NCBI GenBank assembly: GCA_964199315.1
Contig: OZ116700.1
Location: 2,418,001-2,482,000, forward strand
DNA from: Orbicella franksi
Taxonomy: Eukaryota
DNA: 64,000 bases
Direction of reading: 5' to 3'
The notes beneath the pieces were generated by a model, which saw only the letters and a list, made by a program, of their open reading frames with translations, searched no databases and was not told the DNA's origin. Position numbers and translations under genes: made by a program. Of this stretch, positions 11-25,264 are shown piece after piece (within the stretch, counting starts at the first letter, position 1; each line of letters starts with the position of its first letter).

Positions 11-3000
11 CTCAACGAAGGTCAGACAGGAGGTCCTGTTGGAGTGGACATTAATGTTCTTCCAGTATGGAAGAAGGGCTTCACGGGCAAAGGAGTTGTG
101 GTATCCATATTGGATGATGGTGAGTCATAAACTTATGTTGAGTCTTCATTTTTATGTGGCTAAATGTAACTTAGGTAAAGTTTGACTCGAGCCAATAGTG
201 GTCAGAGGCATTTCAGAGCAGCCATGCTCTGTGCGGTCTCATACAGGATTTCGCACAACCTACATGTTTTGCTTGCCAGCTGTGTAAGAACGTGCAGTTT
301 GCTTTGAGTGTGATTCATGCTTCTAGCATGCTTTTGCTCCCTCGCCTCCCTCCCTTTTGCTGGTGATGGTAAGTATCTCCACTGATTCTATTAGTTTGAC
401 AGTGCCTGACAATTGCCGCTCTCAGAGTTGCCATAGATACCTGCTTGCTCTGCTTGATGCTCATATTTCACCTGACTCCATCATCCCTTAGGCCCCTTTC
501 TCAAGCTATTCAGTTGGTGATGAGTTTAATTTGACTATTTTACTTTAAAAAATACACACACACTTGATTTGCTCACATGAACATGGCCTTTGTTTTCAGC
601 TCTCTGAAATGCATAGCAGTTCACCATATTTCTTTCTTTCTGTTTTTTTTTTTGGCAGGTGTGGATCACACCCACCCAGACTTAGCCGCAAATTATGTAA
701 GTTGTAGAGTTAGTACTTCAACTTTTGTACCTCTTTAAGTGTACACATATGCAGATCAGTATAGTTACCAAATAGAAGATGATATTCTATATTCTGCATG
801 CTTGAGCTCTAGAAAAACTGCTTGTGGATGCACAAGTGCAGCGCAAGTGCTTTCAGCGGTTTTTCTAGGCAGCAAAAATTGGATTATTTCCTTAGAAAAT
901 GTAGGAACACCATCTTCTATTTGGTTTAGAATATAGCACAGAAAAATGAAAATATCTACGCCTGAGAAAAGGCAGTGATTGTGCTGGCAACATAACATCC
1001 TGGACATACATCTATTTAAAAAATGCACACTCATCTCCAATGATGTGGGTATACAGCAGCTACATTTTATTATTGCGCCTTTCAATAACACGCGGACTCT
1101 AAAATTCAAAGCTCAACCGACAGATGCGTTTTTTGCTACCGTCAAGCAAATGTTCAGCGGCTCCTTGAACCTTCCACTATGTTGTTTGAACTGTGCTCAA
1201 CGATTTGATTTGATTACCGCACTCTCGGCAGTACTGGCAAGCTGGGAGGAGCTGCCAAACATTTGATTGGCAGCAGCAAAAAACACATCTGTTGGATGAG
1301 CTTTGAATTTTAGAGTCCACATGTTATTGAGGGGTGCAGTGAAAGTAAAATACATAAACTGTGCCAAATGAAAGTACTGTTCAGTAGTATTCATTTGAAC
1401 AGTCACACATAAAGATTTCTTTCACAGACTTTGGTCTTTTCACTGAGTGTGTTATTGTTCTCTTATCGTTACAGGATCCAAAAGCTAGTCACGATTTTAA
1501 TGATAATGATGATGACCCTAGGCCACGGGACACAGATCCTGATAACTGGTAATAGCTTAATAATGATTTTAATGTCATATTAATATATTTACAGGTAGTG
1601 TCTTACATGTAACCTTTTGCTTGCTGTGCAAGTTGCTTCCCAGCCCTCCTCCCCCCCTCCTTTCCGGGTCGAAGTAGCCTCCTACACAGATGTTCTTTCG
1701 GCTTGTCATACACTACCCACCCCCCCCCCCAACCCCAACAAAAAAATACATCAGAAGCCCAAAGACCTTCTGCATAGGAGACTAGGGTTGAAATGAAATC
1801 GAAGGAAACAAAAAAAAAATCGAATTTGACTGCAAAATATATTGGTCTATTTGAGTGGACTCTAGGGTTTGAGGCCGACTTCCTGAGCTCCTCCATACTC
1901 TATATAAGGGTTAAACCCAGGCAGGAGAAGAGAGAGCGAGGAGGATAACTTGCATGTGCAGCTTAGAATACTGCCATTGATCAGCACTCTTTGATTAGCT
2001 GGCTATAATAAGAGTGCTCGCTTTCAGCACGTGCATGTAAGTTATCCTTCTAATCTTGCAAGAAAACAGACGCTACGTGCAAAGTGATGACAACTTACCT
2101 GAGTTGCTTGTTGATCAGAAACCAGAGAAAAGGAGCCAGAAGACCAGAAAAAGGTTTTTTTTTTCTTTTTTCCTGATTCCTTTTACAGCCACGGCACGCG
2201 CTGTGCAGGAGAAGTTGCTGCCTTGGCAAACAACTCTATCTGTGGGGCAGGAGTAGCATATCAGGCGCATGTTGGAGGTATGATTTTGTCGGAAATAAAT
2301 TTCGTTTATTTTTCTTTACAGCATAGATCCTTTGTCAATGAAACTGTTTAATGAGAAACATAGTACAGTTCAACCCCTATTAAACGGCCACCCTCGGGGA
2401 ATTGGATAGAGGTCGCTTAAAGGGGCTGGGGCCCGTTTCTCGAAGGTCCCGAAAAGTTTTCGCACCCGGAAAGCCATAGCAAAATCTTGAACCTTACGAT
2501 TACAGAGCTGTTTTATTCACATATTCTTAATATGATCAGAGGTTCCCTTCATACAAGAAGTTTCAGGCGTATACACTTCTCCGTTGTTAGATACTGACCA
2601 ACTAAAAATGGCTTTACGGGCCCGAAAAGTTTCCAGGGCTTTCGAGAAATGGGCCCCTGGCCGCTTAATAGAGGTCAAAACTATACAGAAGCCCTCATAG
2701 GGGCCTTGATTACTGGCCTCCTAATAAGGGTGGCCGCTTAATAGGGGTTCGACTGTATTCCGATGTTGGACAATACCTTTAGCTGCGAGAGTATTAACGT
2801 CAAGAATAAGGAAGCATTCGTAAAGAGGAACTTACAGTAGTTAATGCGCTGTGATTTTTAGCAAGAGATGCCAAAAAAAAAAAAAAAAAAAAAAACCGCT
2901 TCCCTTAATTAACCGAAGAGTGAAACTGATTCATCATAAAAGACTTCTGCTAACTTCGCTTTTTGCCTGTCACTGGTCAAGCAGCGGCTGGTTGCGATAT

Positions 3001-6000
3001 CTACTCTTATTTACAGGCTTCGAAGTGCTCAGTTTGTTTCAGATAGCCTTTTCACAAATTTAACACAAAGCGCGTGCATTTCAGGTGTTCGCATGTTGGA
3101 CGGTAAGGCCACAGATGCGTTAGAGGCCAGCTCCCTGGGATTTCAACTTCAGTACGTTGACGTCTTCAGTAACTGCTGGGGTCCAAAGGATGATGGAAAA
3201 ACGTTTGGCAAGCCAGGTCCCTTAGCAGCCAAGGCCCTGAAGAGAGGAGCTGAGGCGGTAAGACACGGGGAATTATTTCCTGTTCGAGGTTTAATCGGGC
3301 GTTATCTAACTAGTACTATGGTTTTACTGTGAAATCTGGGAATTACACTTAACTTAAAAGAAACTATGGAATTTGTTGACTTAACTTGTAACTGAGTGCT
3401 GAAAGACACATCTCATTAGTTGACAACCACTATGCCTTAGCCCCTGACCACATTAATCGATTACGGTGCCAAAACTGCAGCCTTTTGAAAACGCATCGTT
3501 TTGAAAACGTTTCCTTTCTAGAGTGGGTAGGTGAAAACGGAGGCTTTTGAAAACGGTGCCGGAAAAAGCGTCATATACTGTCGTTTCTATCAGCGTTTTC
3601 GGTCGTTTTTATAGTGCGGACGATAGGCGAAAACGCATCAAAAAGTATGCATTTTCATACGAAAACGCATTAGTGTGTGGACAAGTGAAAACAAACCGAA
3701 AACGTTAGTGTGGGCGAAAATATTTTGCTTCGCTTTGGTTGTGACGAAAACGGATACTTTAAAAAACGCATTAGTGTGGTGGAGACCGGCCTTACATTAT
3801 TGAAGTGCGACCAGTAAATGCGTGTATCGCTTTGTCTTAAAAGTGCATCGAATTGGCGGCATCCAGAGGCCGATGGATATGGCAGTTCGTAATAAATCCG
3901 GCCCAATCTCCTCCAGTCTTGACCATCCGTGGTCGTTTATACTTATCATTACTGCTTTTGGGTTTTTCATCCTTAATCAACGCTTATTTTTAAGATTCCT
4001 TCCTTTGGAAGATAATTATCAATTCTCCACGTTGCGATAATGCCAATCGTGTTGTTTTTTCTATTCCAGGGTCGTGGCGGCAAAGGTAACATCTACGTGT
4101 GGGCGACTGGTAATGGAGGTCTGACAGATGATGACTGTAACTGTGATGGTTACACCACCAGTATCTACACAGTGTCTATCGGATGTATCGGGGACCATGG
4201 TCTGTCTGCTTACTACACTGAGCTCTGCTCTTCTACTTTAGCGGTCACGTTTAACGGAGGTGCTCACAGAGAGCGCGAAGAAAACAAAATGGTACCTTGA
4301 TTCGTTTTCTTAGTTGTACTGCAGTATTACTGATGGCGAGTAGATCTTAGCGGATGCTTGTCGAACCTGCCTTCTCTAATTGTTGTTTTTGTGAATTTAT
4401 TTGTTTGTTTTTGTAGATCACTACAGATCTTCATCATCAGTGCACAGAGCAATTCAAAGGCACTTCATCTGCCGCTCCTCTGGCAGCAGGGATGATAGCT
4501 CTTATGTTAGAGGCTAAGTAAGTAATACCGAGTCCATGCAAGTTCGGTCATGTTGCAGCTCTCGTAAGGTCTCACATGAATGGCTTGAAACCCTTTGAGA
4601 GGACAATAGAACAAACAACAGAAACAATGCCCCCTAGCCCCAAAACAATAACAGCTGCTGCAATGACGACAAATAGAATTACAAGATTGCGAGAGCTGGT
4701 ACACTACCGACAAGTTCTGGCGCTTCACCTAAGCTGCCACAGGCTTCCGCCATTAGCTCGGGTTTTTCTGTTTATGGAACCAACTAAAACTAGGGCCTGA
4801 TCCAAACAATTGACAAATATCACTCTATGTGGTACATACGTTATGTTGTTAAAAGTGTTAGACATCCGGATCGGACTTTCGGAGTCCAATTTTTCCTCTA
4901 TAAAAATGTTTTTCCCTGCTTATGTTTTGTGTAGTTTGAAATTATTCAAGCTCAAAACAGAAGGACAGACAATATAAACTGAAAAACTTACCGAAAAGTT
5001 ACAAAACTGAAATAAAAACTCTCGCTAATCCTGGGTTAGCTTAATCGGGCTTTGAACAACCCAGCCCTGGGACCCGGTTCTCGAAAGCCATTTTTAGTTA
5101 ACCTGTATCTAAAAACAGAGAAGTGTATACGCCCGAAACTTCTTGTATGAAGAGAGCCTCTGATCGTATTAAGAATATGTGAAGAAAACAGCTCTGTAAT
5201 CATAGCGTTTGAGATTTTGTTACGGCTTTCCGGGTGCAAAAACTTTTCGGGACCTTCAAGAGTCGCCTCATGCTACAGAATCCTGAGTTAGCGCCGATAC
5301 CGATGATAACATGATGCATGCAAATGTGTCATTCTGCGTTTGAATCATTGCGGATATTTATTTGTGATAAACATTGCTTTTGTTTTCTGTTTCAGTAATA
5401 AACTTACATGGCGAGATGTACAACACATCGTGGTCAGAACAGCCAAACTAACGAGTCCTGTAGACGACGGCTGGCGTACAAACGGAGCTGGATTTCATTT
5501 TAATCACAAGTTCGGTTTCGGCCGCCTTGATGCTGACGCTATGGTTGAAATGGCCAAATCATGGACTACTGTTCCCGCTCAACGCATCTGCACTGGTGCT
5601 GCCAGCATAGAAGAACGGTGAGCAACCGTCAGTAGCTTCATCGTTACTTATCATACTCACAGGGCTCGAAAAAGGTGCCGTCCGGTCTCCCAGAACAAGT
5701 AGATTTTCCTGCCAGCCATGTAATTTTTCACTCTCTCTTGACTTTCCGCAAGGGCAATGGCCCAGGCGTATATTCTGCCAACTAGGTAGAAAACAAGTAA
5801 ACTAAGATTTGTCCAGGGCAAGCAAAATTTGAGGGCTGCTTGTCCGAAGTGCAAGCTGGAATTCTATTTTTTTTTTCCGAGCCCTGACTTATCATTAATT
5901 TGGTTACCAAACACTTTTCTCGAAAGAATTTTTAAAGAAAATTGATACAGTTGCTTTAGTTTTGGGTTTACTCAAATTGCTCTCTGTGACTTACTGGTTG

Positions 6001-8892
6001 TTTCAGATAATATGGATTGTGCAACAAACACGTGCGATTTATTCGATTCGAACCACTGGTATTGCTTTTTATGCGGTTTGAGGCGGTTTGGTGTTTCTGG
6101 TCATATGACTTCACTTGCCAGATTTTGATGTGACTTGAGAATGATGAAAGAGCCTTCAAAAACCAGAAACAAGGCCAGCTTATATTCATATGTTAGAGAT
6201 CGAAAATTGTAATTCTTCTTTAGCAACAGAGCGGCAATTGATTGAAATCACCAGATTAAACCGAAGCTATTCTAAGGTGACCTGCAACGAGCCTTCGGTT
6301 CTTCATATAGCGACATAGAGTGATATCATTTATGCCTTGCATGTCTTTCGCTGTACAGAGACATCCCATCAGGAGGTGCACTGGAACTGTCCATACCCAC
6401 CAAAGCGTGCGCGGGGACTATTGCCGAGATAAACAAACTCGAACACGTGGTACTCACCATCAGTTTCATTCACCGGCGCCGCGGTGACGTCAGCATTCTT
6501 CTGATGTCACCATCCGGGACAAAGAATGAGATGCTGTCAACGCGCCATTACGATGACTCAAAGGAAGGGCTTGACAACTGGGGCTTCATGACTGTCCACT
6601 GCTGGGGTAAGCACTGTTCAACAACCAAAATGTCCTTAGTAATATCTGTATATTTCTTCTAGCATTGTTTGGAGAAATAGACTTTCTGTGAAGAACAGGG
6701 TAAATGGAGTTGCCACAGGTCAGGAAAAAAGTCGGGCTTCTTTTTCAAGGTCAGGGAATTTCTAATCTGGCCAGAAAAATATAAAATTTTTATGAAATTT
6801 AGAGAATTTTATTTTCCCGTTGCTGTAGTTGAGAAACGTTTTGTTGTAGCCAGTGAAAATGTTTTTCAAAATAAATTGGAGGCAAGTTTTATTCTGCTCA
6901 AGACAAAACCAGGGAATTTTTTACTTTCCTCCTACCGGGCGACCTACTTAGACTGGTTAGTATCTATACAAACTGCTCAATTTTATACGTAGTGCTGTTT
7001 ACAAATGGAACTTTTTTCGCATGACCTTTTTGCGTTTCTTCAAGTGTGGTCATGCCACATTGTAAGCTATTTTTATCCTCAGCATCTTCAGCCATCTGAC
7101 CTCGCTTCCATTCGGGTTCCTACCTTTTGTTGGGTGCTGTTCCACAAAATCGAACCATTCAGTTATTGATCGTTTTGTGACAGTATTTACAATAATCATT
7201 TTCCCAAATCATGCTGTTTCACTTGAAAACGAACTAGGTTACACTGTTAAATGTGTCATTATTTAGGTGAGAATCCTCGCGGTTTCTGGCAGTTGAAGCT
7301 CATAGACAATCCTCTGAATGAAATCGGGGATCGCGTGTTGAATGGGTTCGGGACACTGCATCTAGACACCAGTAAACAGGACACTGATGTGGAGGACTTA
7401 GAAGAACAAGTTATCGACGATCAAACCAAACAGCAACAGACCCATGTACAACAGCTGAAATTACAGGTATCATCACAAGTGTGCAAAAACAATGTAGTTA
7501 CACGTGCCTTGGAAAAAATTAATCACACAACGCTCTCCAACGTCAGGAACAAAAATCCGGACGACACCGGTTGCACGTTTTCCCGCGCTTTGTGCCGGTG
7601 GCGTGTTTTCACACGCTTGTCACCGGATGCGGTTTCTCTGCGCTTTACACTGGTTCTAATTTTTCATAGATTGCAAGTAGTCTGTCTTTTGCTCTAAAAT
7701 CTGCAGCGAAATACGCTAAAAGAAACCTGTGGGAACTAGCACGATATTTCAGAGGCGAGCGATGAAGCTACGAGTCGCGAGTGTTGCAGGCGTGGTGTCT
7801 CTTTTCGCTCGTTTTCTGACCCCCGGGCTACTTGTGGTTTAGTCTCCCACCCCTCGAATATTGTAGTTGTTCGCTCAATTTTTGCGGTCTTCCCTGCGGG
7901 TTCTAGAGCAAAAGAGAGTCTGCGAGCATTCTGCTGTTTCCTGCGCTTGGTACCGCTGACGATTTTTTCTGTGTTTGTAACTGGATGCGTTCTCTTGGTA
8001 CCGGTTATACTCTTTCCCGCGCTTGACGTCAGTTGCAGTTTTTGCTTGAAGTTTTGATTGAACAGTTTCGTTGTTTCCGTTTGCTGTGATGAGTTGAAGT
8101 GATTATTGTGGCTTTACGACATTGTATCATTTCTGGGTTTCATTTTATACCATAATTTTCCTTTGCTAGAATGCCCATGTTGACTTTCCATATCCCCCTG
8201 GCGTTAGACGAGATGAAGTGCGGCACCAGAACAGGTCTGAAATGAGCGAACAAAGCGTGATAGACGATCTTTATAATCTCACAGAAAGCGACGTGGCCAG
8301 CACCACGGAATACGTGTACGATCGCAGCCGAATCTCGTATCCCCAAAATTCTGGAAGCGGAGATATTTCCGGTAGTGATCAGGATTTCGGAGATCCCGGG
8401 CTTGACCTTAATCCCGAGGGATCTTCTAGTGGGGAACATCCCATGGGATCAGCTAATGAGAGAGTTTACTTAGAAAAAATCCCCGACGATGACATGGATG
8501 CCGAAGAGCGGGACGACATTTCGAATCCCGCGGGATTGAGGGAGGCATCTTGGGACGGTGTACCCGACGACGAGGAATATCTCGACGAAGACATCTCCAA
8601 TGATAACGAAGACCTTAAAGATACTTTCGAAGAAAAACCATCTGTACCTAAGAAAACGAAATATAAAGCTGGAAAGAGGAAAACAAACAAACCAGTTGCA
8701 AAGAAAAGCGTTGTTGTAGACAATAACTCTAATACGATAAAGAAGAAGGTTCAAGTAGCGGCCGAGGAGACCGCTACCCAGCGTGTTCAAGTGAACGCGG
8801 GCTACGAAAATCCCGAGATCCCTTGTTTGGGCAGCGGCTGTTCAGGAGTGTTGTTAAAATGGGTGTTGACATTTTATGGAACTGAAAATTAA
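11..8892 (+). CDS. Proprotein convertase (subtilisin/kexin S8B family, soluble PC1/3-like architecture), paralogue A; 5'-partial, 11 exons in window, 732 aa encoded here
   Basis: Hand-spliced GT-AG exons with consistent phases: 11-119, 659-696, 1475-1548, 2189-2277, 3085-3257, 4070-4291, 4417-4517, 5396-5617, 6359-6606, 7267-7466, 8170-8892(TAA). Catalytic motifs VSILDDG (Asp), HGTRCAGEV (His), ATGNGG (oxyanion Asn), KGTSSAAP (Ser). P-domain RRGD and terminal WVLTFYGT. No transmembrane or Cys-rich region. Confidence 0.95.
1083..1329. repeat. Imperfect inverted repeat (82-bp arms at 1083-1164 and 1248-1329), probable MITE remnant
   Basis: Left arm aligns without gaps to the reverse complement of the right arm with 12 mismatches in 82. 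Confidence 0.8.
2366..2755. mobile_element. Tc1/mariner-pogo-type MITE (TA-flanked) carrying a nested second MITE
   Basis: TIRs CAGT(T/C)(C/G)AACCCCTATTAA(A/G)CGGCCACC at both ends, flanked by TA. Confidence 0.85.
2429..2656. mobile_element. PIF/Harbinger-type MITE (228 bp) nested in the element at 2366-2755
   Basis: TIRs GGGCCCGTTTCTCGAA / TTCGAGAAATGGGCCC; 3-bp TSD CTG on both sides. A partly deleted inverted copy lies at about 5069-5260. Confidence 0.85.
3437..3795. mobile_element. Degenerate MITE with internal GAAAACG repeats
   Basis: Imperfect terminal inverted repeats (…ACCACATTAAT / ATTAGTGTGGT…); multiple internal GAAAACG(C/G)A motifs. Confidence 0.5.
5069..5260 (-). mobile_element. 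Inverted, partly deleted copy of the Harbinger-type MITE at 2429-2656
   Basis: Shares GAAGTGTATACGCCCGAAACTTCTTGTATGAAG and CAGCTCTGTAATC with the reverse complement of 2429-2656. Confidence 0.75.
5660..5886. mobile_element. hAT-like MITE
   Basis: Terminal CAGGGCTCGAAAAA / TTTTCCGAGCCCTG; no clean adjacent TSD. Confidence 0.55.
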
Positions 8893-9104
8893 GAACATTT
8901 AGTCTAGCAATTTTTATTAATTTATCAATTTTATAATTCTCAGGAACAGACCAACCACAGCTACATCTAGGTATATATTAGACCATCATTTGGCTTAATT
9001 TTGAAAAAAAAAAAACAGGCTCAAGAGTGGTTTGTGATAATATTACACCTTACTACAACCGTGTATAGAATCGAAACCTTTGGCTGAGCCATATATTCGA
9101 TTCT

Positions 9105-12379: not shown

Positions 12380-15300
12380 ATGAAACCGGTGCGATGGCGT
12401 GTTTACATCACGTTGTTTTTCCTCACGTCGGAGATCGCCGTCTTGCTGGGAAAGCCTGCCAAGAAGTCACGTAAAAGAGGCAAGCGAACGCTCGAGTCGA
12501 CGCCGAAGCTAACGCGCAGAGAATGGGAACAGCTTCATAAGTTCGAAGATGCGCTTAAAAACGACAATGGAGAGCTTATGTTCACCAATTCCTGGGCTGT
12601 CAAACTTGACCCCGCCGAGATAAAAGTCGCGGACAGGATTGCTAAGAAACATGGATTTACAAACTATGGCCAGGTAAGATTGGGTTTTTTCTTTATGTTG
12701 TTCTGCGGGTGTTCTTACCTTTGAGTTTAAACGTCAATAATTCCGCCCGGTGGCCTACGCTTTGAAGAGATGCATCCTTCGATCTATTGTTCTTTTGATG
12801 TTAGAAACCCTTGCCATTGGCCTTAACAGTAATTCACAACACAGATGCAAACTTTGCGCTGTTTTTTATAGAAATGTTGGCTTAATTTCTTGAAATCGTG
12901 ACATTAAGTGCGCCATACTACAGGTAAATCGACAATTGGTTGTGTTTGTTCAGCACCAGTTATGTTAAGAGTTCTCCAGTTTGTTTCGACTTCTGTTTTT
13001 AAGTGCTATACTTCTCAAGCAAAGCTCATAGGGTACATAAAGATTCTAGCCATTCTTTGCTTACCTAATGTCCACTAAGATATAGCCGAACTTTTTAGCA
13101 AAGCATTATATTTATCTTCAGATTCAAAATTGCTCAGGGTGCTTTACAAATAAATTTCGGATTGTTTGGATGGGTCCAAAGGGAAAATCAAATTGATTGG
13201 TTTTATTGCTGTTTTGTTTAATTACCAATTTTCCGCCTAAAGCATCGAAGGAAACAAACCGCCTCTGATAAAAGCGAGGGACTAGGCCCAAGTCTCACCC
13301 GTGACTTTTATCATGACACAGTAACTAATGAACCAAGCTGCTGTGATCATGAAGGAAACCTATAAGGAAGATCACATTACTTCTAGTAATCGAATCGGTG
13401 GCAGTATAATTGCGGCTTTTCACTGTCAAAATGTCAGGAAATTGCAAGAGGTCCAAGGGGCCTTAGGCGAGTGCAATTTTAAAGAATTTCAAATTTTAGG
13501 AGTAATGTAAATTCTTTTAATTACTCGAGCTTTCATAAGATTAATATTTTGCTTTTACTGCCTGACTGAAAAATTATGAACCCCTGCAGTTTGACGTATT
13601 TTGTTGTTTTATTGTAGCGACTTTTCAAGTTTGTATACACTTAACCGAACAGCTTTTACCCTCGTTTGAGTTCACTTAAGACTAATCGAGTGGCGCGTCC
13701 CAGCTTGACAAAGAAAGGCAATACCTCTTATTGCGCCTTAGCTTTCTATCACGACTGCCGTTCTCTTATTGGCTACACTACTCACTATCTATTCTGTTGT
13801 AGATAGTGAGTAGCCTAACAAAGTGTGGTTGTTACGAAAATGGCGGCCACTTCTTTGAGTGTTCGAAGTGTCTGTCAAGTCAAGCGGATTAAATAAAGTT
13901 TTGAACGACTGGTAGATTTATACTAAAAGCAATTCGCTTTCAATTTCTATGCGCAGCCCTAGTCAACTATCAAGCAATAGGAATCTCGAGCTCATAATCT
14001 AATTATTATACATCATGAGCGCGCTTCGAAAGGCCAAAACCTTATAGACATTTGTATTTATTAAAACTTAAATAAAATGGTCTACGTTTGTTGAAATTAC
14101 CTTATAAGGCACTGAAGCTATACGAGAAGTGTTATACCAGTTTTTAAAAGCACAAGGTTGTGATCTCAAATTGAAAAAGGTTGGGTATTTCTGTCGTCCT
14201 GTCTCGGTAAAAATCTCTAAAAACTATATTAAAATTGCTCTCCCTGTAACAGTTCAGCCGGTTTATATCTTTGTTGTGGTGTTCCATGAACATGGTAATG
14301 TAACGGTCGTTTATAACAGTTCGGAATACGGAAAAAAATTGAATAAGAACGACTTACTTCGACCCTCTTGCGTGCTACTTGGCTAATCTTTTTGTGTCAT
14401 TAGTTGTAGTTGTGATTAACTCTTGGTGTGATTTTATTCCAGGTTGGGTCACTTAGAGGTTACTATCATTTTAAACATGTAGGCAAAGGTTTACGTCACA
14501 AGCGTCACATACATGAAAAGACCAAGTTATTACTATCTGAAGAAGAAGTAAGATTGCCTCGTCTTCATCATGTTGAACTTTCCTACACGTTAGATAATCC
14601 GACCTCTCTCTCACCGTTACTCCCTTAGGATTGTAAGGAAGTAGCGAGGCCGAGAGGTCAGGGCGCTGGATTTGAAATCCAGAGGTCGTGGCGGGTTCAA
14701 GTCCAGTTCTGACCACTAAGCTGGAGTTGTTTCTCAGTAGACCCTAGTTCAACTTCTCGGTCATGCTTGCAAAAAGTTTCGAAAGTTTAAGGTAGCTTGA
14801 ACCCTTGCCACAGAATGTTTTTAAACTTTGTTAAAAGTTGCATTTTATCATGCTTATCACAATTCGATAATAAAGAAAATGGGGATCACCGAGCTCATTT
14901 TTGAGTTATAAGCGCTTAAAACTAACATAAGGGTGTTTTTCGCAGGTTGCATTGTTGCTGTGGTGACCTGTTATATAGAAAGGATGGCTGCAACTTGTTT
15001 ACCAATGATTGGGCATTTGTTTGAAACCATTATTGCATCACGTCACTTGCAATTGTTTAACAGTAGTAGTATTCATTCTTCAAAGTATGGCTGTTAGAAC
15101 ATTGCTGGAAAATGTTGCCAGCCTCCTTGATATTTTACAATATTAAATATTTAATATTAATTGAGTAATCTTGATTTTGATAGTTTACGCCAATCTTGAT
15201 GCTCTGCTGAGTGCATTATCGAATTCACCTCATTATAATTTATACAAAGGAGTATCAGTCTGCGAACAGGCTCATCGCGGGGAAAGAAAATTGTCACCAG

Positions 15301-18300
15301 TCCTTCTTACTTGCCACGCGAAGAGCCTGCTCGCAGGCTCAGGACTATAGGCTCCGTTTTAGCATTTTTCTTGATTTTTATGGTACTTTAGAAATGTCAT
15401 TTGTTCTATGTGTCCTAGGTTGTATGGGCGGAACATCAGCACATCTTAGTAAGAACAAGAAAGGATGGTATTCCTAGTGATCCTAAATTCAGAGACCAAT
15501 GGTATCTTGTAAGTATACCTAGGCTCTCAGTTTCACAACAAATAAATTCCATGTCGCCGTGTGTCTGTTCAGTAATAGATAAAAAATGACGTCAAAATGC
15601 GTCAGGAACAAAAAAAAGTGGAACACTCGGCTATCGCCTCATGTGTCACTGATGTTCTTACCGCATTTTGACGTTTTCTGTGATCTGTTACTGAACAGAC
15701 GTAAGGCAACATGGAATCTACTTGTTTTATATAATAAATAAAAAAATGGTTAAGGACGTCATCTATGCGTCTGTCTCCCAATAGATAATAGGTAAGAGCC
15801 AATCAAACTGCAAGAATAACTCGACATATTATATAAAGGAAAATATCACATGGTTTTCCGATCGAAATTGAGCTAAGTGCATAAGAGGATAGTGATATAT
15901 ACACGCAAACGTATTTGGGACAAAAGCTTTGTAAAAGAATTGAAAACGTAAAGCGAAAATATGTTGACAAACGAGCAGGAATTTGTGGGTGTTCCAGACC
16001 ATGTCGTAATTTTAAAATTAACTGTCATAATCTGTTATCATACGACTCTAGCTGCTATTTCTTCAATCCTCTTAGAATGTATTATTGTGTTATTTCCTTG
16101 TGTATAGTTAAACCAAGGCCAGTCAACCGGCCCAGCAGGTGTCGACCTCGATGTCATGCCGGTCTGGCGGCAAGGTATCACGGGAAGAGGAGTTGTTGTT
16201 AGTATTCTTGATGATGGAGTGGATCACACGCATCCAGATCTTAGAGATAATTTTGTAAGTGGAAGAAGTCATTTTTGACATTATTGATGACCAACTAGAT
16301 CCTATAAAACCATTTAAAGTAATAAGAGATACCATTAGTCAGTGTGGCAGCAAAATATAAATCTGAATCGGAAATTAAAAAAATTCCTTGTTTTTCATTG
16401 TATTTAAATTTATAGATTTTCATACACACGGAAGACATTCGTACAAAAATATTGCACCTGCAATTTTATTGCGCTGTATAGGTGTTTCTCAGTGTTTTTG
16501 TTGTATCAAAGTTTCGGAAGCCGATCAAGGTAAATAAGGATTCTTTTTTTTTTTTAACTTATTCACGTAGGACCAAAAGGCCAGCTATGATTTTAATGAC
16601 ATGGACGCTGATCCCAAGCCAAGAGACAGTGATCCTGACAACTGGTAAGTACCTCACGTGATCATTTGAAACTCAGTCCTTCAGTATGAAACCCGGTTAC
16701 GAACGTGATGCGCAACAAAGTTGTCCGGGTTCTCCATTTTTTTTTATACCCGCAAGAGCATAATTTAAGTATTCGTACTCGATACATCCTCCTCCACTCT
16801 TATCGGATTCATGAATTTACTACGCGCGCTGTACGTGATTGGTTGAGACTCATTTACTGTAACATTGATGGGCAGGGGTTCCATGTAGATATAGCAAGTC
16901 AGCAATTTTTCTTGGACAATTCTGTCCAAGGAGGAAAGGTGCAACCCTATGTGAAGCAGCAACCCGAGAGACAAGGCCAGACCCCAACACTGATAACTAC
17001 GTGCCCTACTCTTTGAGAGAAGTGACAGTTTTTGCTACGAGGTTTTAAATCACATCGTTATGTGACGACTTCGATTCGATATCTACCCCGTCAGACTGAT
17101 ATGAGTTACAGTTCGTAATGTTTAAGGAAATAAATAGAACAGCACAGAAGTTAATGAAGAGACAAGGTACTTCTTGCATCACCGTTTTGTTTGTTTGTTA
17201 CTTACGGAACTTTCTCAACATTTCAGTCACGGCACACGGTGTGCAGGAGAGGTGGCAGCGGTAGCTAACAACAGTGTATGCGGAGTAGGTGTAGCTTATG
17301 ATGCCAATATTGGAGGTAAACATTACATTGACACAATTCAGCACATAACAGTCCGTCATAGTTTATACGAATTAAACAATAGTAACTACTGATATCTATA
17401 AGATGGAGTGAAATTGTAACGATTACTGCCGAGTAGTATTTTCCCAGAACCAGTTTTGTCTTGTTGCCTTAGAGAAACCAGTATAATAGGTGAAAACCTA
17501 CTAGATTCCTGTCTTGTGGTAAACGAAGAGAGAGATATTCGTTAAGTTCTTATTTCGTTTGTTTGTCTCTTGTTAGGTTTTTACGGCATTCGATTCATTA
17601 AATACCAGTTTAAAATCCAATTCACATCCAATTTCCTAAACACGACAACATTTTCATATAGAAGTTGAATAATGAAGTTAATAATAGAGTTAATAATGAA
17701 AGTATTGCCACATGGGAGGGTTCACACTAGCCAGTTGCAGACCCTAGTTTATAACTGAATTAAACCTGTTTCAAATAACTTCCACGTGATTGGCTGATTC
17801 ACAATACATAATCCTTTAAAAATGGTCAATTTATGGGGAGCAGATGTGGCGCATTGGTGAGAGCGCACCCCTCCCACCAATGTGACCCGGGTTGATTTTG
17901 TTGTTGGTTCTCGCCTCACTCCGATGGTTCTTCCGAGGGCTGAGTTCTCCGGTTTTCCTCCCTCCACAAAAACCAAATTTCAATTCGACCAGGACAGACG
18001 ACCAGCATGAAAACCAGCTAAGGCCAATGTGGCTTCCTCTCTAAATACAGTAATTTATTTTACTTTTATCCCAGAATGCATCTTTGTAATAGCTTAGAAT
18101 GGGGTAATAAAAGTGGTATTTAGGGTGGCCGAACACAGTTTTCAAGAGCCTCTGCTTAATTCACCATTACTTTAAAGATATTTATGCTTTGGCGCCCGGT
18201 TTTTGCAAGAGTCAACGTTAACCACAGAAGGGTTTATTCTCACATTTTGACTAAGGTGAGTGCTGTTGCCATGGCAACGGGGCTGGTTAAAAACAAGGCT

Positions 18301-21300
18301 TAAAAATGGTTTTTGTTTATTTAAAAAAAATTCAGTCGTTAGATTTTTTTCATCATTTGCCCACTATGAATGGACATTAAATGCCTTCTGTCAACACTGT
18401 TCTAATAAAATTTGACATAGGCGACTTTCGTAATTCGCCGTAAATCGTTTTCACTGCATGTTCTGTATTATTAAAAATTCCCTATGTCAAAATTCAGATT
18501 TTTTGCGATAGATCATTCGCGTGGTTTCTGAATTATTTTCAGACCAAATTTCTTGAAATTCTAACGACTGGATCGTTAGAAATCGGCAAGTTTCTACAAA
18601 AGCAATCGGTCTCAATTTTTCGAGCAACTGCGCATGCGCTGCATTTAACTGGGTTCCTTCGGTAACAAAGAAAAATCTGAGAATTGCTGGGTTCTTTGCG
18701 TCGTTACCTTTTCTAACATAGCTTTGTAATAAAAGACTAAAGGCATCAGTACACTGCGTTCAATAATGGAGAAAAATAGCGCATATAGTGCGGGTGTTGA
18801 GTAACTGAATAAAATGATCGCTCTATTGAAGGCATGTTTTGCATCAGCAAAAGCGCGCGCGAAAACAGTGTTCGGCCACCTTAAGCGTATCATTATGCTA
18901 CTAGAAAACCAAACGGAACCAAATTACCAGTCAACATGCAATAACGTAGTTCATATGACTAAAACATTTCCTCGTTTTATGTTTTGAAGGCGTGCGAATG
19001 TTAGATGGCCAGGCGACTGATGTGTTGGAAGGAAGCTCTCTTAGCTTCCAGTCAGAATACATTGACATCTACAGTAACTGCTGGGGTCCTAAAGATGATG
19101 GCAAAACATTTGGCAAACCAGGAAAACTGGCACAAGAGGCGTTAATGCAGGGCGCACTCAAGGTAAAGACGAAACATTCAGTTAGCTGTAGTAGAAGATT
19201 ATTTTGACGCACCTGACGATATTGTGGTAATTACGTTAACATTACAAATGTCCCCCTGAGGGGAATTCCCATATTCAAAGGCGGGGAATACTCGTCTTCT
19301 CGCGTAGGGGTATAAATCAAGGATTCTGGTCTCATTTAGGGTGCTCATGACGAAACGCCACTATTTTTAGCTGTCAAAGTATCTTTTAGGGTACACTCGA
19401 AGAAATAATGATAATAAACGTTCTCATATCCGTTTTTTGGCTCGATTTCCACCGGTCTCTCGAGTCCGGTCTACTCTACTAGCGCGGGCTGCTTTCCTGA
19501 ACAGAGGCTGGTGATCAAGCCTATCTTGTTTTAAGTGGTATCTTTTGGGAGTCAAACATAGCTTGAGCCACGCTGGGCATTCCCGGCCTTTTCATGTGAA
19601 AGTCCCCCATCCCCTTCCCTCCCCCACCGCGGCAGATGTCCTGGCCTGCACAAAAATTGTCAAGTGGTATAATAGTTAAGGTGTCCCCACCGCAATGTTT
19701 TGGTGCGATAGACATATCCATGCATTTTTTCAGGGTCGTGGCGGCAAAGGTAACATCTACGTGTGGGCGACTGGTAATGGAGGTCTGACAGATGATGACT
19801 GTAACTGTGATGGTTACACCACCAGTATCTACACCATATCAGTAGGGTGCATAGGTGATCATGGTCTGTCGGCCTATTACACCGAGCTATGCTCGTCTAC
19901 CCTGGGTGTTACTTTCAACGGAGGATCACACAGAGAAAAGGAAGAAAATAAAATGGTAAGCATTTCAAAATTAGAAGACATATTTATGGAGCTTAAGTAA
20001 ACCACGACGACGACGGCAACAAGAACGTCACCAAACAAAAGGTTTAATGAGAAAAACAATAGTTCGTACGTTTTTAATCTTAGTGCCTTTATTAGCCGTC
20101 CTCTGCGAAACAAGAAGGTGAAACGACTAAGTTCTGCGTAGTCTGAGGAACGCGAACGAAGACGGCCAATTTCCTCGTATTTCCATTTGGAATTGAACGC
20201 TGTCATTGCATATTTAGCCTGAGCACGTTTTTAGAGCCATTGGCGTTCTGAACAGATCTAGACAATTGCGAATTTCGCTGGTAAAATATAAATTCAGTTT
20301 TCACTTGGCGTCGTCCTCGGCGTCGTCCTCGGCGTCACCGTAGTCGTTGCTTAAGCTCCCTAATAACTCTTTGGAGAGAGATTATGGTGAAGTGGTGAGA
20401 GCGCTCGCCTCCCACCAATGTGGCCCGGGTTCGAATCCTGGACCCGGCGTCATAAGTGGGTTGAGTTTGTTGTTGGTTCTCGCCTTGCTCCGAGAGGTTT
20501 CCCAGGTTTCTCCGGTTTTCAACCATGCACAAAAAAACAACACTTCTAAATTTCAATTCGATCTAGAAACAGGGGATCGAGAAGAGCCTCTCCGGGGGAT
20601 GTGCCATTGCAAATTCCTATTATTTATTTATTTATTTATTTATTTGTGTTTATTTTAACTCTCAACTCTTCCTACTTGATCGAAAGCCGTATTCACAGAA
20701 ATATTATGTTTCAGGAACATTTATTGCCGGAGGGAAATTCAACCAAAATGGATCACTTGATCGATAACGCGTGCTGTTCACATAAGTACAAACCATTCTT
20801 TTGTTTTGTCTTAGGTAACAACAGATCTTCATCATAAGTGCACAGAAGAGTTCAAGGGAACGTCCTCTGCTGCTCCTCTGGCTGCAGGAATGTTTGCTCT
20901 CGTTTTGCAGGCTAAGTATGTTACTTTCCATTGTCTTCTACAAACAATTTTAGCACTCGGACTGGTCGTATTAAAGGCGGGTTATTCAGTTATATTTGAA
21001 AAGAATCGTCTAAACATTCCATGTACGTAGTAACGTAGTCGTATAAATGGGTGGTCGAAAAGTAGAGGTTCTTAGCCGTTGACAACACAAATATTCTGCT
21101 TGACAATCGGTTGATTTCTTTTCAGCCCAAACCTCTCATGGCGAGATGTCCAACATCTTGTGGTTGAAACTGCTCAGGTAACGAGCCCAGTTGATGAAGG
21201 ATGGATGAAAAATGGAGCTGGCTACCATTTTAATCACAAGTTTGGCTTTGGAAGGTTAGACGCGGGAGCCATGGTAAAGAGAGCGAAGACATGGAAAAAC

Positions 21301-24280
21301 GTAGCACCACAAAGAACCTGTCACGGACCCTCTAGTCAGACACAACAGTGAGTAATATCTATAAAATATCAGCAAAGTGGACCCTGTGGGGTGATAAGCT
21401 ATTAGCGTAACACATTCAGTACAAAGACAAAACACAAACGGGAGCATCTACATTTTTGTTTGAGAGAAATAATAGAAAGTTATGCCGACTGCTTAAAGTG
21501 GAACGGTATAAAGACCCCAATTTTCCGTCCTTCAAGTCAAAGAAGAATCTAAAATAGCTATACACTCATTATATAGAAACGTTATCGAAATTACGGTGAA
21601 GGACTGAATTGATTGCAAATTTTTCCTTCGTTCACGCAAATTGGTTTATGTGGCAACTATTTAGTTCGGATTTATAACATTATATGACTTGCGAAACTTA
21701 ATTTTTAGCGATGATAAATTCCGCTCTAATTTTTGTTGCCCTCCGGTATGACAACAGGTCATTGGGTTATAATTAAAAAGAACAAACAAGTGGTGACCTC
21801 AATACAAATTCTTTCTAAAGAAATCACAGAAAATGTATAACAAACAATCAGGAGAATTTTTATATCGATACTGAACTTCTTGCAGGGAAATTCCCGCTGG
21901 CGGAACGTTGTCAATCACTATAGACACCATCGCATGTGACGGAACTGACAAAGAAATCAACAAGTTGGAACACGTGACTCTGACCGTCAGCTTCCAACAC
22001 CGGAGGCGTGGTGACGTCAGCATCGACCTGTTCTCGCCGAGTGGGACTAGGAACGAGATGTTGTCGACCCGTCGTTATGACGATTCTAAGAACGGCCTTC
22101 ACGATTGGACGTTCATGACCGTGCACAACTGGGGAGAGAATCCCAAGGGAGTGTGGGTGATGAACGTGACTGATAACATCGCTACGTTGAACAAGGGGGT
22201 CGACGTGAATGGATATCTCCAACATGACACTAGCAAACAGGAAGCCGATGTGGAGGACTTGGAAGAGGAGGTAACATGGCGCTACAACCTCGCGCAAAGC
22301 TAGTTGGAACACCTAACTGAAAGAAAAAACATACTTCAATTTTTCTGGTATACTGACCAACATCCAAAACGTTTTCCCCTCCCTACTAAAAGGTTTATGC
22401 GGTGGTTGTAAAGAGAAAAAAAAACATCGAGTCGGAGATGGAGAGGAGGGCGTGTTTATTATGGTTTGATGCAGCATAGTGCGCATTGATTAAAACACAG
22501 AACTGTCTTTACCCGGGAGGCGCCATGGCCTCGTGGTTAGTGCGCTTGTCTCCGGATCGAGCGGTCTGGATTTACGTCCTGGCCGGGGACGCTGTGTTGT
22601 GTTCTTGGACAAATTAAAACACTTAACTCTCACAGTGCCTCTATTATCCCAGGTGTATAAATGGGTACCGGCGAACTTAATGCTGGGGGTAACCCTGCGA
22701 TGGACTAGCATCCCATCCAGGGGGGAGTAGAAATACTCCTAGTCGCTTCATGCTAGAGAACCCGGGATAAGCTCTGGTCTGATAGGCCACTTAACTCGCA
22801 TGCAAACTTTACCTTTTTACCAATTCAAGCTCAGGGTAGAGTTTGATTGAGTCTGATGGTTAAATGTAGGTTCTCGCTCGTGATGCAAGGGCCAGGCCGC
22901 TTTGGGAACGTGCGGCAAGTATTTCCGGAGGGCACATTTACGGAGTATATACTTCAATTAAATTTCTTAATTATGTTGTGTCAATCACGAATTTAAAGGT
23001 CATTGACGACGAGAAGAAAACTCAGGAACTAGAGGCTAACAAAGATGGACCAAATAGAGCTAAAAACAATAAAGGCGCGGCCTGGGATGCCCCTTATCCT
23101 GAGGGGGTGAAAAAACACAAGATTCACATACCAGAGGCTCCGCAGGCTAAATCAACTAATGATCATGAAGAGGAAAACGTGAAAGCTGATGGTAAGTACA
23201 GAAAATAAAGACCTGCATGAAATTATAGAAGTAAGACCTTCATTATTTGCAGATGAAAATAACACAAAGTTAAAGTTAGGCTTTCACGTCTCAGTGCATG
23301 TGCAAGCTATAACGTTAAGCATTAATTTTTATTGGTTATAAAACAATGGGAAGAGCGCTGATGATTTCAGCGGTGACGATAGAGGTAAGGTTCCTTATTA
23401 AAATTCCTGTCGTATGTTCCGACTCCCTGCATAAAGTACATTTTTGTCTTCGTGTCAACCACATGTATTTTAGTAATTGCAGACTATGATTTTGTGAAAG
23501 TAGCATGATACCCTTCTTATCGACGTGCAATTGGTCGAAGACATCATGTATGGCTTGCACATGCGCCGCACTGTGAAACTATCCCTTAAAAATTGATTGC
23601 ATTTTGTATTGTTCTTTTCGAAATTAATGCCGTCATCCCACAAACTTACAAAAATTAAGAATTTAGGCCTGGCCTATGGACAAACACATGAAATGAAGTT
23701 AATACCTTGTTCCAGAAGTACCGTGGCTTGACGAACGTTGTATTAGGGTCAAGTGTTACTGAGGTAAACGGTAAGCACTCAAACCACAAACGTGGCGCAC
23801 ACCGTTGGAACTTGTATCGGTTTTCATAGTGTAAAGGGACCACTGTCGTATGACGGGATGCCAGATCAGGCAAGGGTATCTCAGTTTTGCGGTAACAATT
23901 TTTATTCCTGGCTGGAAAAAGGCGCTATAGGGTAAAATGTCTTGTCCTATAAAACTTAGACCGGCAAAATTTCAGACAGTTGCGGTTTTCACTTGAGTGT
24001 CGAAGATAATTCGCATTTACTTTTTCTTTGAATCATTACACTAAACAAATTGCTTAAAAACTCGCTCATTTTGTCATTCGATCAGGATTAAAGCCAGAAC
24101 CAATAGTGACTTGCTCGCAAGCGTTCTCCCTCGCTTCGTACCGGCTACACGTATTTGCTTCAAGTTTTCATTGTTTCCTTGGACCGTCTGCGGTCTGTCA
24201 TTGGCTAGAGTGACTACATTAGTGTTTATTATTATATAGCTAGCTCCGCGAGCGGGCGAGATGAATCAAATCCTGCGCTG

Positions 24281-24311
<31 letters not shown>

Positions 24312-25264
24312 TATCTTGCCCGCTCGGGACTACCCGCCGTGTCCCGCGAGAAAAATTTCCCCGAAAGCAATATAATAAATCCTTTATTGACCAAGCTTGT
24401 TCGGCCAAGATGGCTGGATATTGGCCTCGTTCTTTTTTTGCGAGTTTATCGACCTCGACTCCGTCTCGGTCCATGAACTCGCAAAAACAGAACTTGGCCA
24501 ATATCCAGCCATCTTGACCTCACACTTGGTCAATAACCCATATGTATTTTACAACACACAACTGAAAACTGCTTTTATTAACAATTAAAATGACGTTCAC
24601 TTGAATTACAGGTTTATTATATGAGGAATATCTAAAAACACATGTCATATCCATTGTAGGTCTCTTAATTTCCAGCATGTTTGAACTAATGTTTATTTTG
24701 CGCTTCAAAGTGCCAGGCAATACAGAGGCAGAGGCATTGGAAAGTTATGAACCAGGAATGTTCGATACCATTCTCCCAGAGGATTTTCAAAACGGAGTAG
24801 GAATTAGCCAAGATCCGGACGCTTTTGTTGCCGCGTTTGAAACACCAGACGTCACACAGGACAATAACTATCAGATGTTAAAAGCATCGAAAAAAACACT
24901 TAGTGATGAGGACAATGGTGACGATGAAAGTAACCAAGTTTACGGATACGATCGTTACATTTACACGAAGGAGCCCGACGAACCACCGAAGGTATCCGAA
25001 AGTAAACGAACAGATACGGATTATCAGGGACAGCGTGTTCAGGTCACAACTGAAGAGACTGGGTCCCAGCGGGTGCAAGTCAATAATGGATTTCAAGAAG
25101 AGTTCGTTCCGGGATTAAACCCGGAGTCTGGGCGGATTAGTTCAGGAGTGTTTTTAGAATGGAAGCTGACATTTTACGGTACGGGTCCTAATGATAGCGT
25201 GTCTGGAGATGATGAAGACGACGAGGATGATAATGATTCTTCAGATGTAGATATTGACTTGTAG
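12380..25264 (+). CDS. Proprotein convertase (subtilisin/kexin S8B family), paralogue B; complete, 13 coding exons, 882 aa: signal peptide, propeptide, catalytic domain, P domain with large insertion, acidic tail
   Basis: Exons 12380-12673, 14443-14547, 15419-15508, 16108-16254, 16571-16644, 17227-17315, 18990-19162, 19734-19955, 20815-20915, 21126-21347, 21886-22270, 22999-23191, 24711-25264(TAG); total 2649 nt, all GT-AG, phases consistent. Propeptide motifs [18 protein letters not shown]. Mature start [15 protein letters not shown]. Intact Asp/His/Ser triad and oxyanion Asn. Confidence 0.95.
13740..14010. repeat. Interspersed repeat, same family as 9105-9410, opposite orientation
   Basis: Direct visual alignment to the reverse complement of 9105-9410. 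Confidence 0.7.
14637..14775 (+). mobile_element. tRNA-derived SINE fragment
   Basis: A-box-like TAGCGAGGCCGAGAGG, stem-loop CTGGA-TTTGAAA-TCCAG, B box GGTTCAAGTCC, followed by a non-tRNA body; no clean acceptor stem. Confidence 0.6.
15549..15715. repeat. Hairpin-forming interspersed repeat
   Basis: CCATGTCGCC…TCTGTTCAGTAATAGAT…GACGTCAAAATGCG pairs with CGCATTTTGACGT…ATCTGTTACTGAACAGA…CAACATGG. Confidence 0.6.
17835..18067 (+). mobile_element. tRNA-derived SINE (same family as 20373-20645)
   Basis: Shared TGGTGAGAGCGC…CTCCCACCAATGTG(A/G)CCCGGGTT…TTGTTGGTTCTCGCC…TTTCAATTCGA body and TATT-rich tail. Confidence 0.7.
18124..18880. mobile_element. Non-autonomous DNA transposon (757 bp) with TTAA-like target site, possibly Kolobok-type
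   Basis: TIRs GGTGGCCGAACAC(A/T)GTTTTC; flanks TTAG and TTAA. The superfamily is inferred from the TTAA site and GG termini. Confidence 0.65.
19986..20361. mobile_element. Harbinger-like MITE; related copy at about 51700-52015
   Basis: Termini GGAGCTTAAG / CTTAAGCTCCCT; GACGAC subterminal repeats; GAACGTCAC(C/T)AAACAAAAGGTTT shared with 51720-51745. Confidence 0.65.
20373..20645 (+). mobile_element. tRNA-derived SINE with (TTTA)n tail
   Basis: A box TGGTGAAGTGG, B box GGTTCGAATCC, family body as at 17835, tail TATTTATTTATTTATTTATT. Confidence 0.75.
22515..22815 (+). mobile_element. tRNA-derived SINE with a conserved central domain (resembles CORE/Meta-type domains); second copy at about 58955-59135
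   Basis: A box TGGCCTCGTGG; body GTGTTCTTGG…CTCACAGTGCCTCT…ATAAATGGGTACC…ACTAGCATCCCATC shared with the second copy. Confidence 0.7.
24232..24545. repeat. Palindrome-rich interspersed repeat, likely a non-autonomous element
   Basis: Internal inverted repeats CCCGAGCGGGCAAGAT/ATCTTGCCCGCTCGGG and TTGACCAAG…AAGATGGCTGGATATTGGCC / GGCCAATATCCAGCCATCTT…CTTGGTCAA; fragments at about 39440-39500 and 40040-40075. Confidence 0.7.

Follow-up and report, generated by a model that had tools for sequence, protein, structure and literature searches.

Can the P domain of a proprotein convertase be interrupted by hundreds of residues and still be completed by its own last strand? The question is raised by two tandem kexin/furin-type convertase genes, here called PC-A and PC-B, which both lie on the forward strand of a 64,000-nucleotide stretch of the Orbicella franksi genome (assembly GCA_964199315.1, contig OZ116700.1, positions 2,418,001 to 2,482,000; "the window" below, with coordinates counted from its first letter). 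Furin and Kex2 have a canonical catalytic domain and an eight-stranded P domain. Every kexin-like convertase needs its P domain, which is generally viewed as a folding unit that cannot be divided, and in PC1/3 truncation of its C-terminal end abolishes folding and activity. The evidence presented here makes it very probable that PC-A and PC-B represent a group of cnidarian PC3-like convertases with a furin-like core, in which the loop between the last two P-domain strands has grown into a long lumenal insertion.

The 5' end of PC-A is cut off by the window start, and the gene ends at 8892 (stop codon, 8890 to 8892); PC-B spans 12380 to 25264. Six-frame comparison of the two regions recovered the conserved exons of both genes. 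The catalytic Asp, His, oxyanion Asn and Ser motifs, including GTSSAAP, were found in PC-A and PC-B, and both appear from their sequences to be active convertases. In PC-A, the end of the catalytic domain and the start of the P domain are encoded at 5396 to 5617, an exon supported by spliced RNA contigs, GT..AG introns and a match to the paralog. The middle P-domain strands follow at 6359 to 6606; in corrected form this exon includes just the first base of the WG|ENP Gly codon, and its successor begins at 7267. The penultimate strand (WGENP...DN) is coded by 6603 to 6606 plus 7267 to 7310, and its PC-B counterpart (22130 to 22177) aligns to the furin strand WVLEIEN.

Between this strand of PC-A, which closes with WQLKLIDN at 7310, and the last strand (8845 to 8883) lie 277 residues, encoded by 7311 to 7466 and 8170 to 8844. 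In PC-B, 240 residues encoded by 22178 to 22270, 22999 to 23191 and 24711 to 25144 separate the strand ending in WVMNVTDN from the last strand at 25145 to 25183. An earlier reading of the bare DNA letters (the original prediction) had given the same sizes and coordinates, which our analysis reproduces exactly. It had also described the inserts as rich in Asp and Glu and as sharing three sequence islands. Indeed, Asp plus Glu make up 21.3% of the PC-A insert and 22.1% of the PC-B insert, versus 11.2% of the remainder of PC-A, each insert has a net charge of -29, and all three islands are present. Both genes have the last-strand signature GV(L/F)L.W.LTFYGT. The PC-A chain ends shortly after it (..YGTEN), with no tail, Cys-rich or transmembrane region past the P domain.

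Profile searches return the split match that had been predicted. The P_proprotein family (PF01483) matches PC-B with an E value of 4.8e-24 over profile positions 1 to 72 of 86, and the PC-A exon at 6359 to 6606 with an E value of 1.9e-14 over positions 1 to 57 of 86. The end of the PC-B match at position 72 is expected because the last strand is displaced. Neither gene has a contiguous P domain with a short last loop. Orthologs carry PF00082, and the inserted P domain is a variant feature of proteins that stay within the kexin/furin-type (peptidase S8B) family.

For PC-A, RNA evidence comes from assembled contigs of four runs from four different studies, aligned over 3050 to 9000. These contigs contain GT..AG joints at 3257|4070, 4291|4417, 4517|5396, 5617|6359, 6606|7267 and 7466|8170. 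The joint 6606|7267 was found in three of the four runs, and 7466|8170, which removes the intron within the insert (7467 to 8169), in all four. One contig from run X1 (1768 nt, 0 mismatches) is unbroken from 4141 to 9000 across all those exons, with aligned segments at about 4141 to 4290, 4416 to 4517, 5396 to 5616, 6358 to 6605, 7266 to 7464 and 8168 to 9000, and therefore includes the whole insert and the last strand. Weak intron-retention pieces at 7470 to 7652 and 7698 to 7899, inside the intron at 7467 to 8169, fit pre-mRNA. In the mature mRNA, the insert forms part of the coding sequence that is translated.

Alternatively, the insert might be subject to alternative splicing or behave as an exitron, with a convertase of the canonical short-loop form as the main product, spliced from a donor near NGF to an acceptor before SGVLLKW. 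Some sequence features could serve such an event: both genes have a pyrimidine-rich, AG-ending stretch (..ttcag|GAGTG) directly before the last-strand codons and weak GT donors near the end of the penultimate strand, and rare isoforms would be invisible in contigs. However, insert-skipping contigs for PC-A are absent from the four RNA runs, and every contig crossing the region includes the insert. Candidate donor/acceptor pairs inspected by eye are mostly out of phase, transcript-length contigs from many cnidarians (2.7 to 3.6 kb, 780 to 930 residues) also include the insert, and the insert is under purifying selection. We consider a short-loop main product exceedingly improbable.

All introns of PC-A and PC-B have GT..AG borders as read from the sequence. 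In PC-B, one exon region (22130 to 22270) encodes the penultimate strand, the following loop and the first half of a helix module. A middle exon with AG/GT borders (22999 to 23191) runs from VIDDEKK onward and includes a PYPxGV-dibasic motif. The last exon (24711 to 25264), found in 13 RNA runs, encodes an acidic spacer, a VQV module (25028 to 25102), the last strand, an acidic C-terminal tail and the stop codon. The first join rebuilds a helix motif that runs uninterrupted inside one PC-A exon, and RefSeq models of Pocillopora and Acropora have the same joins as PC-B. So does P0240, a transcript contig of 2898 nt that encodes 875 residues and agrees with the Acropora digitifera model with 7 mismatches and 0 gaps. 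Each gene also has an intron of its own: in PC-A, 660 nt within the WG|ENP codons (6606|7267), where PC-B (22130 to 22140) has none, and in PC-B, an intron within the helix motif (EEE|VIDD) that PC-A does not have. These one-gene-only introns indicate that intron positions have been altered since the duplication.

Whether the P domain is completed by the distal strand was addressed with an AlphaFold2 prediction, based on a 44-sequence alignment, for P0050, a PC-A ortholog (86% identity) obtained from a transcript. The model has a confident furin-like core, a helix at residues 518 to 543 with a predicted local distance difference test score (pLDDT) of ~73, ~210 residues (546 to 757) with a pLDDT of ~30 and a distal strand at 767 to 781 with a pLDDT of ~95. 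The AlphaFold2 model of Hydra variant A, a relative discussed below, shows the same pattern. Superposition of the P0050 model on furin (1p8j_A) with VIA-align gave a Z score of 51.6 and a root mean square deviation of 1.9 Å for 465 of 470 furin residues, pairing model residues 36 to 783 with furin 109 to 575. As the superposition reaches furin 575, the distal segment is what pairs with the last strand of furin. Superposition on Kex2 gave a Z score of 48.9. Furin (PDB 1P8J) and Kex2 share with the window proteins the core fold, the catalytic motifs and the canonical last-strand signature W/F-x-L-x-L/F-Y-G-T. In the models, the distal GVxLxWxLTFYGT segment fills the canonical last-strand slot, and the protease core would thus be an ordinary furin-like fold.

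In a two-chain complementation test, P0050 residues 1 to 500 and 715 to 783 were folded as separate chains alongside three controls. The ipSAE interface score was 0.96, versus 0.01 for the best of the three controls; of 78 solved complexes, 51 attained this mark, as did 2 of 108 mismatched pairs. The two-chain runs agreed in at least 65% of their contacts, and the partner pLDDT was at least 56. The last strand (766 to 783) pairs with P-domain strands 383 to 396 and 420 to 432. That the P domain is discontinuous and that the distal WxLTFYGT segment is its last strand, as originally proposed, is well supported by these predictions, and the models together with the canonical last-strand signature support closure within one chain well. 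In the two-chain model, catalytic-domain residues 195 to 197 of P0050 also touch the C-terminal piece. They fall in the stretch at 3151 to 3190 of the window, where PC-A has Lys and Gly at what we take to be furin Glu257 and Asp264.

Docking of the separate C-terminal piece indicates that strand insertion needs no covalent link. The distal strand might then dock in trans, the tether completing the P domain of a second molecule and producing domain-swapped dimers or chains. A disordered tether of 240 to 277 residues could reach that far, and the isolated piece docks confidently on a core lacking its last strand. Nevertheless, the AlphaFold2 monomers close the fold in cis, tethering of the strand kinetically favors cis closure, and nothing favors trans over cis. 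We find assembly between molecules very unlikely and prefer a P domain that is split but closed in cis.

In proteins of the PC-A and PC-B types, the insert consists of an amphipathic helix, a PYPxGV-dibasic motif, a disordered spacer and a VQV..QRVQVNxGY module, in that order, followed by the last strand. The helix is present in every insert-bearing paralog group and the VQV module in the PC-A and PC-B types; the helix, the dibasic motif and the VQV module all occur in both window genes. The PC-A insert starts with a loop at 7311 to 7364 that contains NGFGTL and has a pLDDT below 50 in the ortholog model. Anthozoan PC-A sequences keep N-G-F-G-T-L-H-L there (7344 to 7364), hydrozoan sequences lack it, and it resembles the start of furin's last strand, N-N-Y-G-T-L-T-K; it may be a relic of the origin of the insertion.

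The helix module of PC-A (7365 to 7466) is marked by its conservation and by the helix in the AlphaFold2 model. Scored over 44 sequences from all five paralog groups, it has one Asp and one Glu that are invariant (44/44) and a second Asp kept in 42 of 44. Its hydrophobic positions are spaced i, i+3, i+7, i+8, indicating that the helix is amphipathic. The dibasic motif (8182 to 8211) occurs as PYPxGV(R/K)(R/K) in nearly all PC-A and PC-B type sequences. The acidic, low-complexity spacer of PC-A (8212 to 8739, pLDDT ~30) differs in length among taxa and contains an island, EYVYDRSRI (8305 to 8343, forward strand), whose form EY.YDRS.I is common to PC-A types. The third module (8740 to 8844) has the form (K/R)VQVxxEETGxQRVQVNxG(Y/F), near-invariant in PC-A and PC-B types from corals to Hydra and Myxozoa, and adjoins the last strand; in the PC-A type a Cys-x6-Cys loop stands behind it. 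Only two copies of the VQV module occur in the 497-Mb genome, both in the window genes. The last strand, two further residues (EN) and the stop codon occupy 8845 to 8892, and this strand is the part modeled at a pLDDT of ~95 that superposes on the end of the furin P domain.

The ratio of nonsynonymous to synonymous divergence (omega) was estimated by the Nei-Gojobori method between window PC-A and the P0050 transcript; the core (catalytic and P domains) had a value of 0.028, the part from the helix to the dibasic motif 0.012, the VQV module 0.024 and the acidic spacer 0.25, values that are rough because synonymous divergence (~1.2) is saturated. By this measure the insert is under purifying selection, and the modules are as constrained as the enzyme core, with the spacer held more loosely and mainly by composition.

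The architecture is wider than this genome, PC-A and PC-B being orthologs of PC3-like endoprotease variants A and B. A HMMER scan with the last PC-A exon over 1.84 billion representatives returned 36 proteins, and two length-aware searches then added full-length relatives. Both strands and the insert are present in Stylophora, Pocillopora, Acropora, Montipora, Oculina, Dendronephthya, Paramuricea, Hydra, Hydractinia, Clytia and the myxozoan Thelohanellus. The conserved islands, whose search in cnidarian proteins including the Hydra PC3-like enzymes had been suggested, are shared by PC-A and PC-B type proteins of corals and Hydra. Partial or truncated models from Sanderia (a scyphozoan), Henneguya and Nematostella have the start of the insert and end before the last strand. 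The older Nematostella "predicted protein" models (P0125, P0136 and P0149) end within the insert; the split domain appears to have truncated these gene predictions.

The spacing of the two strands was measured in the 140 of 227 collected convertases that were long enough. In 50 of them, 93 to 722 residues lie between the strands, and all of those with a species name are cnidarian. Within the collection of 227, Anthozoa, Hydrozoa and Myxozoa are the only groups to which inserts at this loop could be assigned. By the same measure, 53 canonical convertases have only 11 to 23 residues. The automatic pattern missed one or both strands in the other 37; on inspection, the cnidarians among these included further insert-bearing paralogs and truncated models, and the non-cnidarians inspected had short loops. 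In another group of cnidarian convertases (Porites and others) the loop is of normal, short length, so the insert is not a gene-model artefact. Nor is it due to chance: the same layout occurs in more than 40 orthologs and paralogs and is under purifying selection.

A tree built by a quick method with the insert columns removed places all insert-bearing sequences in one group, with a Shimodaira-Hasegawa-like approximate likelihood ratio test (SH-aLRT) support of 93. Within it, the PC-A type (SH-aLRT 96) and the PC-B type (99) each contain anthozoans and hydrozoans, indicating that the insert and the A/B duplication predate the split of Anthozoa and Medusozoa. Window PC-A groups with PC-A of Stylophora, Acropora and Montipora (SH-aLRT 99). 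It shares 86% identity with its counterparts in Stylophora and Pocillopora, and PC-B shares 85% with variant B of Pocillopora. Among bilaterians, the rows closest in the tree are "PC3-like" proteins of crinoids and elasmobranchs and "NEC2-like" proteins of lophotrochozoans; the only row named PC1, from Toxocara, sits on a very long branch in this quick-method tree. Extra paralogs have inserts of ~93 residues (Acropora and Montipora; P0150 and P0153), 140 to 180 residues (Clytia and unnamed sequences) or ~700 residues, Lys/Ser-rich and then acidic (Montipora and Oculina; P0141, P0142 and P0166). The ~93- and ~700-residue coral paralogs retain the helix and last strand only.

Such variation could suggest that the loop is a dispensable, drifting expansion without a function of its own, tolerated at a permissive surface position. 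The wide range of lengths and the spacer, which is barely alignable and poorly modeled, would suit that idea, as would crinoid and elasmobranch relatives whose loops are already about twice the length of furin's. On the other hand, the acidic residues of the helix are invariant or nearly so, the modules (omega 0.01 to 0.02) are as constrained as the catalytic core, and even the spacer, at 0.25, is conserved to a degree and both paralogs share the same net charge. The insert has also been kept since before the Anthozoa/Medusozoa split and is still present in the reduced Myxozoa. Drift without function is highly improbable on these grounds.

Most insert-bearing sequences are annotated as "PC3-like endoprotease variant A/B," and the Hydra cDNAs of variants A and B were reportedly described by Chan et al. 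in 1992 (PNAS 89:6678). Hydra vulgaris variant A (NECA_HYDVU, 793 residues) belongs to the same family and has the same architecture as PC-A and PC-B, sharing the WGENP strand, the DVExLEExVID helix, PYPxGVRK, the VQV module, the Cys loop and the final ..LTFYGT strand. Only its spacer differs, in length and sequence, the whole insert measuring 178 residues versus 277 in PC-A and 240 in PC-B. Unlike Hydra variant A, PC-B has no Cys pair in its insert and has an acidic tail after the last strand. Hydra variant B (NECB_HYDVU, P0048, 710 residues) departs from variant A (P0046) just after PYP in the insert; its alternative end begins with a second GVRK.KV copy and contains neither the VQV module nor the last strand. 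Judging from its sequence, the variant B P domain should be incomplete, and for want of the last strand the protein is predicted to be folding incompetent or regulatory.

The original prediction had ranked this as the best candidate in the window for an undescribed enzyme architecture, which was overstated in that the layout is routine in an annotated, phylum-wide PC3-like family. The part that stands concerns the literature. In the full texts searched we found no account of a P-domain split or insertion in cnidarian convertases; the 1992 Hydra paper lay outside that search, and prior notice there is possible. A 2019 preprint on convertase diversification (10.1101/802215) has no mention of a P-domain insertion. 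What is known, then, is the family and, since 1992, the insert within a Hydra protein sequence; what seems to be missing is an explicit published description.

What might the loop do? The acidic C-terminal tail of PC1/3 (PCSK1), an accessory segment outside the fold, is partly helical; it undergoes cleavage at dibasic sites and influences both activity and sorting to granules. It is a possible functional analogue only, because it follows a complete P domain, whereas the cnidarian segment threads inside one. Neither Pfam searches of the insert pieces nor an ESM Atlas search with the last exon found sequence similarity between the insert and the PC1/3 tail, and the ESM Atlas feature search with that exon gave no usable match. 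Two Pfam matches to the insert fell below their cut-offs and are put down to chance: APP_amyloid (15.1 bits versus 27), from a GYENP resemblance, and GW (13.9 bits versus 21). By analogy with PC1/3, the loop may take the accessory role of such tails in sorting or regulation, with the accessory region placed inside the fold rather than behind the P domain. In the arrangement that we prefer, the helix would pack on the enzyme body, and the acidic spacer and conserved motifs would serve sorting to or retention in acidic, Ca2+-rich compartments of the regulated secretory pathway, modulate activity, or both. Clipping at the conserved dibasic site might yield an enzyme of two chains that the docked last strand keeps joined; according to the two-chain model, such a cut need not make it fall apart.

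Several points weigh against this picture of a split, regulated convertase. A minor insert-skipping isoform may exist, as contigs drop rare isoforms. Support for the PC-B splices is indirect, coming from their borders, from ortholog models and transcripts and from the RNA runs that contain the last exon. The evidence for docking is model based and may in part reflect model memory of furin, and the omega values carry the uncertainty given above. AlphaFold2 and ESMFold2 both leave the placement of the dibasic motif and of the VQV module uncertain, and the idea that either acts as a pseudosubstrate in the active-site cleft is unsupported for that reason. PYPxGVRR may also bring to mind the C-terminal inhibitor peptide of 7B2, a resemblance on which no claim is built here. 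The sorting, Ca2+-binding and cleavage roles of the loop, like those of the dibasic motif and the VQV module, are putative.

Other features of the window were seen along the way. A 104-nt tract is identical in PC-A (4067 to 4170) and PC-B (19731 to 19834) and covers the exon with the oxyanion Asn (ATGNGG). RNA contigs break or overlap exactly there, with records ending at 4170 and starting at 4141, a pattern that fits an assembly-graph fork at a gene-conversion tract. Within the PC-A intron at 4518 to 5395, contig depth reaches 500 to 5300 over 4443 to 5238 in all four runs, and many of these contigs continue into unrelated sequence, which points to a fragment of a high-copy repeat or transposon transcribed in many contexts. 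Farther downstream, within 27782 to 34817, both GC and AT skew are strong at 28 to 32 kb in the composition profile.

A more speculative proposal treats the split P domain as a synapomorphy of cnidarians that is linked to the cnidocyst. The acidic loop with its conserved modules would direct these convertases to, or keep them in, the cation-rich vesicle of the nematocyst or polar capsule, and there the enzymes would mature capsule proteins and toxins; the proposed substrates are those with acidic proparts ending in basic pairs. Myxozoa are not known to have neurons, and the retention of the insert in this group counts for the idea. Proteomic work puts such enzymes in organelles of the cnidocyst type: PC3-like endoproteases have been found in polar capsules of Ceratonova (PMC5566210), and the venom proteome of Chrysaora includes an enzyme of the PC-B type (PMC4848628). 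This evidence is correlative only; we see the link as a testable idea that is rather unlikely to be correct.

For those working with these genes, the split has practical consequences: Pfam and PROSITE matches to the P domain are truncated, studies that require complete Pfam domains may drop such genes, and older gene models, as in Nematostella, end inside the insert. For the family as a whole, a phylum-wide clade in which 93 to 722 residues separate the final two strands is evidence that a natural split is tolerated by the P-domain sandwich. It offers a ready-made system for the study of strand complementation and of how an accessory region may control sorting and activity.

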